DNA of 62,912 nt, filler included, from Octopus bimaculoides (Eukaryota): NCBI RefSeq assembly GCF_001194135.2. It is 7 parts of 6 records of this genome, joined end to end, with 100 filler letters (N's around TTAATTAATTAA, not from the genome) between each part and the next. Parts side by side here need not be neighbours in the genome. Positions count along the whole stretch, not along the records: positions 29,881 to 53,371 come from NC_068990.1; 6 more parts are not named here. The stretch is one strand, 5' to 3'. The translations under genes and the position numbers were made by a program. A model generated the notes under the pieces. The model saw only the letters and a list, made by a program, of their open reading frames with translations, made no database searches and was not told where the DNA came from. Below are positions 31,073-38,399 of this stretch, piece after piece. Each line of letters opens with the position of its first letter. Within the stretch, counting starts at the first letter, position 1.

Positions 31073-32240
31073 CAGGGTGCGATGTCACTATTTTTGATTT
31101 CACGCATGCGCGTTGTTTTTTTAAATTTTGTTGACTAAACAATATAGTAGGGTCTGGTGGGCACCGTCTGTGAGAAAAACAACACCATGACGCAATTCAC
31201 TCTGCCAGAAATTTGGAAACGACATGCTGCACTGCTTGGCATTCACGCCGGAAGCTCCAAAAACGAACATTTCAGAGTGTTTGGGTGTCAATCTGAGGAT
31301 ACTGCAGAGTATTCGAAGAGTTGGATGAGTTTAATGGTGATTACGAAGCTACGGCAGCTCGGAAAACTCTCTCTGATCGTTCTGTTAAGAAAAGAACTCT
31401 TGAATTTTTTGGTGAGATCCAGAACATGATTGACAACGATCCCTCCAATTCAATCAGGTCCATCGCCAGGGACATGAGAGTGTTTGAGTTTCTTATCAGG
31501 TACATGAAGACATTCGGTATTCCTCATACAAGATGAGAAAGGGCCAATTTTTATCCCAAGTCATCAAAGACAAGAGGAAAGACCGCGTTACGAAGCTTTT
31601 GAACAAACTCAAGCATTCTCTCCAACTTAACATGCTTTGGTATTTCTTAGAGGATTTTTCTGCCAGGATCAAATGGTGAACACACAGAACAACCGTTGAC
31701 TTGCCGTGTCTCCAAGACATGTACTGAGAGTGATAAAAATCAAACATCCAGTCAACATCATAGTATTTCGAGCGATCACTAGTGATGGCGACGTTATGCC
31801 TCCATTCGCCTTCCCACACGGCCTCAAACTCAACACGCAGGCCTACATCAAGTGCCTGGAGGAGATATTGCTACCCTGGATGAAGAGTGTGGCTGTTGGA
31901 AGACCCTATATCTGGCAACAGGACTCTGCACCATGCCACACAAGCAGCAGAACACAGTTATGGCTGTCAGACAATTTCTGTGACCACATCACCCCTAACA
32001 TCTGGCCACCTAACTCCCCAGACTGCAACCCCCTTGATTATTATGTGTGGGGCGCAGATGAGCGAGAGACCAACAAAACTCCTTGTAACAACAAAGATGA
32101 ACTGAAGGCAAGGATTATGGCACCATTCGCCAACTTAAACAAGGAGACCGTCCAAAAGAGTTGCAGGAGATTCCGAAGTCATCTGGAGGTTGTGGTTGAA
32201 GCCAAGGGCGATTTTATTGAATAAATGATTTACTCTTTAG
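31073..32240 (+). mobile_element. Tc1/mariner-superfamily element, DD37D (maT) type, defective
   Basis: Starts CAGGGTG; ATG 31187 to TAA 32224 with frameshifts; QQDSAPCH...WPPNSPDCNPLDY has 37 residues between the second and third Asp; right end lost in a gap. Confidence 0.9.
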
Positions 32241-33091
32241 NNNNNNNNNNNNNNNNNNNNNNNNNNNNNNNNNNNNNNNNNNNNNNNNNNNNNNNNNNNN
32301 NNNNNNNNNNNNNNNNNNNNNNNNNNNNNNNNNNNNNNNNNNNNNNNNNNNNNNNNNNNNNNNNNNNNNNNNNNNNNNNNNNNNNNNNNNNNNNNNNNNN
32401 NNNNNNNNNNNNNNNNNNNNNNNNNNNNNNNNNNNNNNNNNNNNNNNNNNNNNNNNNNNNNNNNNNNNNNNNNNNNNNNNNNNNNNNNNNNNNNNNNNNN
32501 NNNNNNNNNNNNNNNNNNNNNNNNNNNNNNNNNNNNNNNNNNNNNNNNNNNNNNNNNNNNNNNNNNNNNNNNNNNNNNNNNNNNNNNNNNNNNNNNNNNN
32601 NNNNNNNNNNNNNNNNNNNNNNNNNNNNNNNNNNNNNNNNNNNNNNNNNNNNNNNNNNNNNNNNNNNNNNNNNNNNNNNNNNNNNNNNNNNNNNNNNNNN
32701 NNNNNNNNNNNNNNNNNNNNNNNNNNNNNNNNNNNNNNNNNNNNNNNNNNNNNNNNNNNNNNNNNNNNNNNNNNNNNNNNNNNNNNNNNNNNNNNNNNNN
32801 NNNNNNNNNNNNNNNNNNNNNNNNNNNNNNNNNNNNNNNNNNNNNNNNNNNNNNNNNNNNNNNNNNNNNNNNNNNNNNNNNNNNNNNNNNNNNNNNNNNN
32901 NNNNNNNNNNNNNNNNNNNNNNNNNNNNNNNNNNNNNNNNNNNNNNNNNNNNNNNNNNNNNNNNNNNNNNNNNNNNNNNNNNNNNNNNNNNNNNNNNNNN
33001 NNNNNNNNNNNNNNNNNNNNNNNNNNNNNNNNNNNNNNNNNNNTGTGTGTGTGTGTGTGTGTACATAGTACGTACGTTTGAATGTATGTAT

Positions 33092-36184: not shown

Positions 36185-36190
36185 CCTTAC
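36185..36190 (-). promoter_or_regulatory. 5' splice donor of Brachyury intron
   Basis: AAG|GTAAGG on the minus strand, at the point where T-box similarity stops. Confidence 0.9.
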
Positions 36191-36369
36191 CTTCCATTTT
36201 TGGTAACAATCATTTCGTTGGTAAATTCCTTAAATTTTATCCACAATTCCTTATCTTCCAATGTAACGGTCAGCTGGCGCTCGGTAGGGTCCCCTTTTTC
36301 ACTGCCCACCGTCATTTCGGTGTCAACCGCACTTAAAAGGTGGTTCACGTTGACGGTCTCTGTTTTCAT
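36191..36369 (-). CDS. TBXT: Brachyury (T-box transcription factor T), first T-box-coding exon from the first in-frame ATG
   Basis: Translates [59 protein letters not shown](R). This closely matches the vertebrate Brachyury N-terminus ([46 protein letters not shown]), including the Brachyury-specific HLLSAV motif. The exon ends AATGGAAG|GTAAGG, a phase-2 intron in the NGR codon, as I recall for other Brachyury genes. ATG context aaaATGA. Confidence 0.96.
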
Positions 36370-36487
36370 TTTGCTCAGAGGCAGCGATAATGTTGGTCCC
36401 ACGGGGGAAAGAATTGAACTCAATGAATTATCAATCCTGCTACTGTTGTTGTCGTCGTCGCTGATCGACGTAGTAATGATCGGGGTT

Positions 36488-36548
<61 letters not shown>

Positions 36549-37146
36549 TGTTGGTGGCGTGTTGTATGTGGAGTCGTTGGTTTTGGGGGGAACTATCAAG
36601 ACATTGGAGATGTTGGTGGGGTCGGGGACGTTGGTTGCTATGGAGATGGTATTGTTGTTGTTGATGGTGGTTGAGGTGGTGGTGGTGGTGAAGGTTTGGT
36701 GTTTGTTGTTGCTGCTGTTGTTGGTAATGGTAGTCGTGGTACTGATGTTGGTAATGATTGTGTTGATGTTGATGATGATGATGGTGGTGGTGGTGTGGAT
36801 AGAAGGAACTATTAATGAGCGTGGCGGCAGTGACGGTGTCAGCAGCTGTAGTAGTAGTAGTAGTAGTAATAGTAGTAGTATTGGCAGTGACTCGGTCGCC
36901 GACGCCGCCGCTACTACTGCTGATGTTGCTGGTGGTGGTGGTGGTGGTGGTGGTAGTGTTGCGATCGGTTGCAGTGGTTATGACGATGATGCTGATTGTG
37001 GGATCCGTCGTGGTTGCCGTGGTGGCGGCTTTGGTAGTAAAAGCGGGGGTCGCAGGAGCGAGCGGTGGGTTCACTGTCAGGGGTGAGAGCCAATGTCCGA
37101 AGCGCTGCCGAGACCCTAACCACCGGTGATGCGAACGTCCTCGTCG
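36370..37146 (-). CDS. Possible low-complexity N-terminal extension of Brachyury (Thr/His/Gln/Asn-rich), or a long 5' leader
   Basis: Same frame as the T-box exon, open from an in-frame TGA at 37149-37147 down to ATG 36369 with no ATG (the ORF-track start at 37074 is GTG). His and Gln runs use mixed codons (CAC/CAT, CAA/CAG); (AAT)19 at 36490-36546 reads as poly-Asn. Confidence 0.5.
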
Positions 37147-37150
37147 TCAT
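36914..37150 (-). other. 78-codon ATG-initiated ORF upstream of the Brachyury ATG, in a different frame (uORF or displaced true start)
   Basis: ATG at 37150; MTTRTFASP...[12 protein letters not shown] ends in TAG TAG; offset by 1 nt from the T-box frame. Confidence 0.5.
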
Positions 37151-37199
37151 TGGATGAAAAGGACGAAGAAAAAGTCAAAGAGAGAAAGATAGAGGTGAG

Positions 37200-37217
37200 A
37201 GAGAGAAGAGAGAGAGT

Positions 37218-37255
<38 letters not shown>

Positions 37256-37312
37256 CTGTGAGGGACAGAGATGTCAGAGAGAATAACAGCAGACCGACAA
37301 GACCAACAGGAA

Positions 37313-37370
<58 letters not shown>

Positions 37371-37470
37371 TAAGAAGGTATTAGAAGCAGCAGCAGAAGA
37401 AGAAGAAAAAGAAGACGAAGAAGAAGTAGAAGAAGAAGAAGAAGAAGAAGAAGAAGAAGAAGAAGAAGAA
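37200..37470. repeat. Compound (GA)n/(TAG)n/(GAA)n microsatellite upstream of the Brachyury exon
   Basis: Direct reading; pyrimidine-rich on the coding strand. Confidence 0.95.
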
Positions 37471-38399
37471 ATGACCGATGCTAAAGGAAACAGTAATGAA
37501 GCTTTGAAAGACCGGTGAAAGACGTCGATCAGTAAAAATTGAAGAACGTAAGAGGAATGGGGAGGGGTGGGGTCGAGGGATCGTGCCGAGTGNNNNNNNN
37601 NNNNNNNNNNNNNNNNNNNNNNNNNNNNNNNNNNNNNNNNNNNNNNNNNNNNNNNNNNNNNNNNNNNNNNNNNNNNNNNNNNNNNNNNNNNNNNNNNNNN
37701 NNNNNNNNNNNNNNNNNNNNNNNNNNNNNNNNNNNNNNNNNNNNNNNNNNNNNNNNNNNNNNNNNNNNNNNNNNNNNNNNNNNNNNNNNNNNNNNNNNNN
37801 NNNNNNNNNNNNNNNNNNNNNNNNNNNNNNNNNNNNNNNNNNNNNNNNNNNNNNNNNNNNNNNNNNNNNNNNNNNNNNNNNNNNNNNNNNNNNNNNNNNN
37901 NNNNNNNNNNNNNNNNNNNNNNNNNNNNNNNNNNNGGTGGTGATGGTGGTGGTGGTGGTGGTGGTGGTGGTGATAGCAGCAGTGAAGGCTACGACATCGG
38001 TAATGGAGGAGGGTCCGGCGGTGATGGTGGCGGCGATTGTGGTGATGTAGTTGTGGTGGTGGTGGTATGAAGGCTATATTCTCAGCACTCGGGTGAACTG
38101 TCCTCTCTTGAAGAGTAAGCCAAGGTAGCGTGAATTAGCCGTGGCGTGTCTGGGTCGTGTGTCTGGGATGGACGTTTGACTGACTTGGTGGCCACTGACC
38201 GTCAACGGTGCAAATCTGTTCGGTGGGGTTTGATACAGAGATTCACTCACGCAGACACACAGACATACTGACATACTGACAGTTTCAGTCAGACAGAAAC
38301 ATACAGACACACACACACACATATATATATATAGAGAGAGAGAGAGGTGAATAGGTAGGTTGCAAGTAGTATGACAGGATAGGTAGAGAAACAGGATGG

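Follow-up and report, generated by a model that had tools for sequence, protein, structure and literature searches.

Which codon starts translation of the Brachyury gene in the present assembly of Octopus bimaculoides (GCF_001194135.2) is the question raised by the stretch of DNA analysed here (the window; 62,912 nucleotides, filler included). The first exon of the gene lies on the minus strand of the piece from 29881 to 53371 (NC_068990.1), 23.5 kb of draft assembly interrupted by nine N gaps. On this strand the frame encoding the beginning of the T-box (hereafter the T frame) is closed upstream by a TGA at 37149-37147 and then runs for 319 codons without a stop to a splice donor, where exon 1 ends at 36191 (AAG/gtaagg) and intron 1 begins at 36190; intron 1 runs off the piece, and the rest of the T-domain lies outside it. 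The earliest ATG in the T frame is at 36369, leaving 259 ATG-less codons upstream of it. Between 37592 and 36370 the minus strand carries just two ATGs, both in the frame displaced from the T frame by one base. ATG 37150 opens a 78-codon, His/Gln-rich open reading frame (ORF) terminated by TAG TAG at 36916-36911, and ATG 36604 reads ATG TCT TGA (M-S-stop). An earlier note on this DNA had described the open T frame from 37146 to ATG 36369, both out-of-frame ATGs with their short ORFs, and the T-frame codons CTG 37080 and GTG 37074, and we found all of them as described.

The exon-1 sequence marks the locus as an ordinary Brachyury subfamily member. A tblastn search with mouse T matched exon 1 as the sole exon within the piece, at 66% identity over 62 aa. 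Positions 1-26 of the Pfam T-box profile matched residues 294-319 of the open frame (E 2e-5), with a score of 25 bits against a cut-off of 26 and just 26 of the 182 profile positions falling in exon 1. The N-terminal T-box start that marks the Brachyury (T) subfamily (LW.KF...) was present, the peptide HLLSAV(D/E).E...GSEKGDPTE preceding it was invariant across the exon-1 alignment, and the best named matches were Brachyury or T-box transcription factor T of molluscs and vertebrates, not members of other T-box subfamilies.

A probable start motif one base out of register

At 36604 the window reads tccaATG T CTT GAT AGT TCC, which is an ATG, one extra base, and then L-D-S-S in the T frame. The assembled sequence of 36604-36596 is ATGTCTTGA, and with one base fewer it becomes ATGCTTGAT, ATGTTTGAT or ATGTCTGAT. 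Deleting any single base of 36601-36598 gives ATG CTT/TTT/TCT GAT AGT TCC, encoding M(L/F/S)DSS in frame with the T-box; the motif is in frame only after this removal, and its ATG and L-D-S-S stand at the expected distance. An ATG followed after 0-2 nucleotides by LDS in T phase arose in 0.12% of 20,000 dinucleotide shuffles of the region, and a relaxed version of the motif in 1.1% of them. The minus strand holds no other M[LFIV][DE]S anywhere in the piece. Moreover, the frame of ATG 36604 is stopped by a TAG at 36640-36638, 12 codons upstream, and has no other ATG between the two. We infer that ATG 36604 is the homologue of the canonical Brachyury start, now shifted by one base against the frame that it should open, and we consider this the probable answer to the question. 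The earlier note had taken ATG 36604 for a mere M-S-stop upstream ATG, a view that overlooked the L-D-S-S of a mollusc-type MLDS start, which appears in the T frame one base later.

The architecture of orthologous genes points in the same direction. Mollusc Brachyury begins with MLDS..C[DE][FIL], located 20-50 residues before a conserved MK(S/T), as seen in 12 genomic exon-1 ORFs and in named proteins from Patella, Haliotis, Argopecten, Pinctada, Mytilus, Pomacea, Lymnaea and Gigantopelta, together with one protein labelled Crassostrea gigas. The MK(S/T) of the orthologues aligns with M36369, and the Patella protein starts MLDSS. Genomic contigs of other molluscs have MLDS and the beginning of the T-box on a single exon, preceded by a short leader.

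The closest relative (P0370) was represented by spliced mRNA contigs from three RNA-seq runs, L014, L015 and L016 (Logan assemblies SRR7369732, SRR8281664 and SRR8281681), which are identical upstream. In the T-box part of exon 1 the window and L014 share 95% amino acid and 82% nucleotide identity. L014 has an intact ORF of 539 aa from MLDS, in which MLDSTTTCD stands 122 in-frame codons before MKTEP, and the next stop lies 37 codons farther upstream. Its start context, cccaATGtta gat tcc, shares ccaATGt with ATG 36604, and when the 15-mer at the L014 start was compared locally with 36370-37592, it matched best at 36607-36589. Since L014 and all the named orthologues show coding sequence upstream of the MKT Met, this region is coding in the clade, with MLDS as the canonical start. 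Downstream of 36604 the window is collinear with L014 (LHI, T.SNNN, an N-rich block, and G.(S/T)LS..S(R/K)-MKTE), and at the place of the (AAT)19 array of the window L014 carries a codon-mixed Asn-rich block within a linker rich in His, Gln, Asn, Ser and Thr. With one base removed, the distance from ATG 36604 to M36369 is 78 codons, between the linkers of mussels (30) and L014 (122).

According to this proposal, the extra base within 36601-36598 would turn ATG 36604 into M-S-stop and make the T frame seem start-less. With the base removed, the protein would start MLDSS (or MFDSS or MSDSS) and carry a 78-codon N-terminal region before M36369, enlarged by the (AAT)19 array, which would be read as Asn19. 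The 259 ATG-less codons would then fall into two parts, 77 codons of genuine or recently genuine coding sequence (36600-36370) and a leader of 181 codons (37146-36605), and the ATG 37150 ORF would be an upstream ORF (uORF) at most. The interpretation in the earlier note is partly supported. A one-base register problem does exist, at ATG 36604 and not before 36914 as had been supposed. Part of the upstream open frame is probably coding, though as an N-terminal region of ~78 codons instead of 235-260, and a long leader with uORFs fits 36605-37146. Long leaders bearing upstream ATGs do occur in Brachyury, because that of L014 spans at least 834 nucleotides with seven upstream ATGs.

Weak evidence of coding in the upstream open frame

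A dinucleotide shuffle gave a probability of 2e-4 for the open T frame. This procedure destroys triplet-repeat structure, and the value overstates the significance of the open frame because the region is built of phase-coherent triplet repeats. All tandem arrays detected within 36370-37146 by Tandem Repeats Finder (TRF) have a period of 3 or a multiple of 3, and 36605-37146 consists of ACC/ACG (Thr-like), ACT and CAC/CAT/CAA/CAG (His/Gln-like) repeats. Under local, codon-position-specific composition, 3-4.5 T-frame stops were expected and the probability of none was ~0.01-0.07; column shuffling gave 0.002-0.013. Open stretches of at least 185 codons occur in three of the six frames of the same region, and microsatellite DNA elsewhere in the piece yields open frames of ~200 codons. 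The open frame suggests coding, though weakly.

The two parts of the region were then considered separately. In 36490-36370, close to the T-box, the T frame has no stop while the other two frames have two and three. For 36605-37146, 2.96 stops were expected in T phase, with a probability of ~0.05 for none. Period-3 arrays are concentrated in 36489-37972 (7 of the 11 in the piece), and together with CAC/ACC repeats they go on into clearly non-ORF DNA at 37316-37470 and 37936-38090. The mixed synonymous codons remarked on in the earlier note are present, but they are not specific to the T frame: among the differences between neighbouring codons in 36912-36370, the synonymous/non-synonymous counts were 9/44 for the T frame, 14/38 and 15/35 for its two alternatives, so that variation inside the repeats shows no preference for synonymous change in the T frame. 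We infer that 36605-37146 is non-coding, probably a triplet-repeat leader that is stop-free by composition, an accident of about one in twenty. Codon-position entropy at 37029-36920 had seemed to favour the frame of ATG 37150; this candidate signal was dropped, as the neighbouring-codon comparison gave no consistent frame signal.

The same stop-poor composition, which yields long open frames locally, would also serve an explanation in which M36369 has long been the only start, all of the sequence upstream is non-coding, and both the open frame and the LDS beside ATG 36604 are due to chance. M36369 has a strong context (aaaATGa), the ATG of MKT is the very point from which the window and L014 are similar as DNA, the MKS Met is the start in some lophotrochozoan models (P0127 and Nucella P0379), and the perfect (AAT)19 array resembles non-coding AAT/ATT arrays elsewhere in the piece. 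This explanation requires the MLDS coincidence (p ~0.001) and the fully open T frame together, and all named orthologues, like L014, encode protein in the region before MK(S/T). We give it only slight weight.

In another proposal, translation truly starts at ATG 37150 (MTTRTF...). The protein would then gain ~320 codons of His/Gln/Thr/Asn-rich low complexity, a one-nucleotide indel in 37146-36914, in the assembly or in this allele, would separate the two frames, the canonical LDS would have been deleted, and the LDS at 36604 would be a coincidence. Both frames are open over 37146-36914, where one indel in 233 nucleotides of low-complexity draft sequence suffices, and the ATG stands in a tccaATG context after a CT-rich tract, as in L014. 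The T frame is open throughout, at the composition-based probability given above, and the purely period-3 arrays of 36370-37146 fit a coding region as well. Comparison with residues 1-65 of L014 gave a weak collinear similarity (z 2.6; 6/300), which fell to z 1.7 for residues 1-45, and true extensions upstream of an internal MLDS exist in some gastropods (P0378, P0382, P0383 and P0121). On the other side, the upstream region resembles L014 without being specific to one frame, 36912-36607 scoring 93.5 in the ATG 37150 frame and 100.5 in the T frame; Smith-Waterman and global alignments of the L014 N-terminus to each frame indicated that the resemblance is largely compositional. No frame-specific excess of synonymous change was found, and the arrays and CAC/ACC repeats reach the non-ORF DNA mentioned above. 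The proposal must also accept an ATG, one nucleotide and LDS in T phase by chance (p ~0.001), with MLDS lost at the start while LDS adjoins an ATG 180 codons downstream. We regard a start at ATG 37150 as unlikely.

Fate of the extra base and competing starts

Should the assembly hold and translation cover the T frame from the 5' end onwards, the reading could enter from an upstream exon spliced near 37141/37140, possibly located in or beyond the gap at 37593-37935, or begin at CTG 37080 or GTG 37074. A branch-like ctttgAc (37180-37174), a pyrimidine tract (37173-37153) and a first AG at 37141-37140 have good geometry for a 3' splice site, a role they may play, and the T frame opens just upstream of this AG; the probability of 0.01-0.07 for the open T frame applies here, too. 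In the genomic contigs of other molluscs, however, MLDS and the T-box start share one exon, and no M[LFIV][DE]S was found upstream on the minus strand of the piece. The 5'-most T-frame peptide looks like an out-of-frame reading of GC-rich DNA, nothing supports initiation at CTG 37080 or GTG 37074, and the MLDS coincidence (p ~0.001) is left to explain. Such an entry appears very unlikely to us.

Nor did an internal intron offer a way to join the frames. A scan of 37150-36380 for introns of length 3n+1 with a usable donor and a pyrimidine-rich acceptor found no compatible GT..AG pair, only one weak donor (37123) and one acceptor with at least 70% pyrimidines (37028). With no such pair, and with a plain in-frame ORF in L014, neither the fusion of ATG 37150 to the T frame nor the spliced or non-AUG extension of ~260 aa, both put forward in the earlier note, gained support. 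Its +1 frameshift, taken as programmed ribosomal frameshifting, fared no better. That idea, which would join the frame of ATG 37150 or ATG 36604 to the T frame, has arithmetic alone in its favour, both ATGs being in the frame one base ahead. L014 and all named orthologues keep a plain continuous frame from MLDS, a shift at 36604 would be needed before the third codon is read, a conserved stimulatory element was not seen, and we know of no programmed +1 frameshift in T-box genes. It has next to no probability in our view.

Translation of the whole 259-codon T frame from a correct assembly would give an N-terminal domain of ~320 residues rich in Thr, His, Gln and Asn, begun at ATG 37150 with a change of frame, in an upstream exon or at a non-AUG codon, and with the old MLDS start absorbed internally as CLDS; we judge this improbable. 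The chance that the protein is extended at length, whether from ATG 37150 or through an upstream exon, is small overall.

For the proposed start at 36604, the nature of the extra base is evenly balanced. It may be an assembly error or an allelic indel, and with about the same probability it may reflect a real loss of the start. In the latter case translation of Brachyury would begin at the conserved second Met (36369), behind a two-codon mini-uORF. The protein from M36369 keeps the HLLSAV peptide and the T-domain, and such a product is plausible because some lophotrochozoan models start at the MKS Met. That a one-nucleotide insertion has truly destroyed the canonical start, leaving a Brachyury without the MLDS N-terminus, is a real possibility and likelier than the ~320-residue domain, though we lean against it. 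Two features of the locus bear on this choice from opposite sides. The four-base target is not a homopolymer, which speaks against a routine assembly error, whereas the conservation of MLDS across bivalves and gastropods makes an easy loss less likely; the assembly, for its part, is a draft rich in gaps.

Several observations weigh against ATG 36604 as the displaced canonical start. The register shift was spotted post hoc, and its extra base is confined to a non-homopolymer target of four nucleotides, an unlikely site for an assembly error. Of the full motif the window has MLDS(S) alone, without the Cys-[DE]-[FIL] found at positions 8-10 after MLDS in most orthologues and in L014. The DNA match of the start region to the L014 15-mer was not significant by itself (63 of 500 shuffles). 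Upstream, the T frame stays open for 181 further codons (p ~0.05), for which this reading has no explanation except chance. The ATG 37150 ORF resembles the L014 N-terminus collinearly (M-TT, L..LTP.S, C, Q.RHH), and 36723-36653 aligns in phase, as DNA, to the coding His/Gln block of L014 (QQQ.P.LH), the one alignment of this kind. Finally, only one closely related species was available for comparison. As further candidates for the MLDS counterpart we considered 'RIDNS' and 'DDD' (~36440), and rejected both since their alignment was no better than chance.

Searches for additional relatives added little and yielded neither reads or transcripts of the species itself nor near-identical sequences. 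Exact look-ups of three window ORFs (295, 60 and 78 aa) in public assemblies found no record, and a metagenome scan for exon-1 relatives returned nothing above 76% identity. An exhaustive comparison of the 319-aa T frame with representative proteins gave no match to the extension, in a set whose clustering at 50% identity hides close relatives. In the word-index protein search, short queries returned mostly short ORFs and missed full-length Brachyury, and P0370 surfaced only with a 397-aa query, so that a negative from a short query does not speak for absence; matches to a hybrid T-domain query were dominated by vertebrates. A search of the literature on octopus, cephalopod or squid Brachyury found nothing on the N-terminus.

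Surroundings of exon 1 and comparison with known Brachyury genes

The features of the locus are collected in Table 1.

Table 1. Features at the 5' end of the Brachyury locus, in positions of the window.
Feature	Position	Strand	Basis
3' part of Brachyury exon 1, conserved second Met to splice donor	36191..36369	-	tblastn with mouse T, identity to L014, Pfam T-box
Putative N-terminal region, 77 T-frame codons, MLDS start to conserved MKT	36370..36600	-	no T-frame stop, collinear with L014, coding in orthologues
Perfect (AAT)19 array, Asn19 in the T frame	36489..36547	-	TRF period 3, 19.7 copies, 100% matches
ATG TCT TGA as assembled; proposed canonical Brachyury start	36596..36604	-	ccaATGt context common to L014; mollusc MLDS starts
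Four-base interval TCTT holding the extra base	36598..36601	-	direct sequence reading; shuffle test
TAG in the ATG 36604 frame, 12 codons upstream	36638..36640	-	direct sequence reading
181 stop-free T-phase codons, C/A-rich triplet repeats; probably leader or promoter-proximal DNA	36605..37146	-	~3.0 stops expected
78-codon ATG ORF, one base out of the T frame; candidate uORF or rival start	36914..37150	-	
TGA closing the T frame upstream; overlaps ATG 37150 (aATGAcg)	37147..37149	-	
(CT)n, (CTA)18 and (CTT)29 microsatellites, pyrimidine-rich, upstream of ATG 37150	37179..37470	-	TRF
Assembly gap, 343 N, ~440 nucleotides upstream of ATG 37150	37593..37935	.	one of nine gaps

Around the presumed leader, a GC-rich block at 36900-37199 (50-64% GC, CpG observed/expected 1.05-1.33; piece average 38% and 0.77) lies directly downstream of the (CT)n tract and could mark a core promoter or transcription start region. 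A scan for TATAWAW between 35153 and 38321 found none and is uninformative, and CCAAT counts equalled the chance expectation. A second CAC/ACC-rich block on the minus strand (37936-38090) stands just upstream of an N gap, into which one of its frames runs. In composition it is like the ATG 37150 ORF, with no real repeat homology, and CT/CTA/CTT microsatellites lie between the block and the exon. In intron 1, a 174-codon open stretch on the plus strand (31700-32221) adjoins an N gap at 32241 and matches the DDE_3 transposase profile weakly, at E 0.0011 and a sub-threshold score of 19 bits; probably it is what remains of a decayed Tc1/mariner-like transposon. The piece as a whole carries an extreme load of microsatellites (AT, AC, AG, ATAG, ATAC, ACGC..., AAT).

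Brachyury is a key gene of gastrulation and axial patterning, and the mRNAs of developmental transcription factors can have long, uORF-bearing 5' leaders. If transcription starts upstream of 37150, the mRNA of the window would resemble these, holding a 78-codon uORF and, as assembled, a two-codon M-S-stop uORF before M36369; this mini-uORF, however, is better explained by displacement of the canonical start than by evolution as a regulator. The Brachyury gene model in this genome hinges on the position of the translation start, and our finding is mainly a question of gene model and assembly. If the extra base is an assembly error, the corrected model would start at 36604 with MLDSS and a 78-codon linker. 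If the base is real, the lineage would have lost an N-terminal motif conserved across bivalves and gastropods and would depend on an internal Met that follows a two-codon uORF. Such an evolutionary variant would be of mild interest, as a small natural evo-devo experiment on the role of the MLDS N-terminus. Either way, the linker from MLDS to the T-box tolerates large homopolymer expansions in this clade, to judge by its lengths in mussels, the window and L014. Long "ORFs" in C/A-rich triplet-repeat DNA are, more generally, weak evidence of coding.

Compared with Brachyury of Patella vulgata (Q8WT06), Haliotis asinina, Argopecten irradians, Mytilus californianus and Pomacea canaliculata, the window has the same exon-1 architecture, consisting of an MLDS motif, a variable linker, MK(S/T), and a phase-2 intron after NG(R), with 74-91% identity at the T-box start. 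It differs from them in the single base that puts the ATG of MLDS out of frame with LDS, and from most of them in lacking Cys-[DE]-[FIL] after the motif. Its linker of 78 codons with a pure Asn19 run contrasts with 20-50 codons in these orthologues, and its intron 1 of more than 6.3 kb with ~1.5-3 kb in Mytilus-like contigs. L014 shares lineage-specific residues and an expanded, low-complexity MLDS-to-MKT linker with the window, whereas the leader of L014 is rich in T instead of C/A triplet repeats and does not stay open in the coding phase. That leader also contains two CCAAT-like boxes (~555 and ~603), and part of it may be promoter or unspliced read-through.

In four Brachyury genes, the gastropod-like exon-1 ORFs P0121, P0382 and P0383 and the 571-aa model P0378 of the gastropod Babylonia areolata, the N-terminus is truly extended, by 66-98 residues ahead of an internal M[LF]DS, demonstrating that the Brachyury N-terminus can lengthen in molluscs. 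P0121, P0382 and P0383 have the motif MD.N...NFLEL.GI in common, and in them the Met of M[LF]DS has stayed in frame, while Babylonia keeps MLDS without this motif. A His/Tyr/Gln run in P0382 (HHHHLRHHYNHYQQQY) resembles the T-frame reading of the window. The gastropod extensions start with their own ATG, whereas the window has neither an in-frame ATG nor the MD.N...NFLEL.GI motif. Judged by these sequences, the N-termini of mollusc Brachyury proteins are more variable than is usually assumed.

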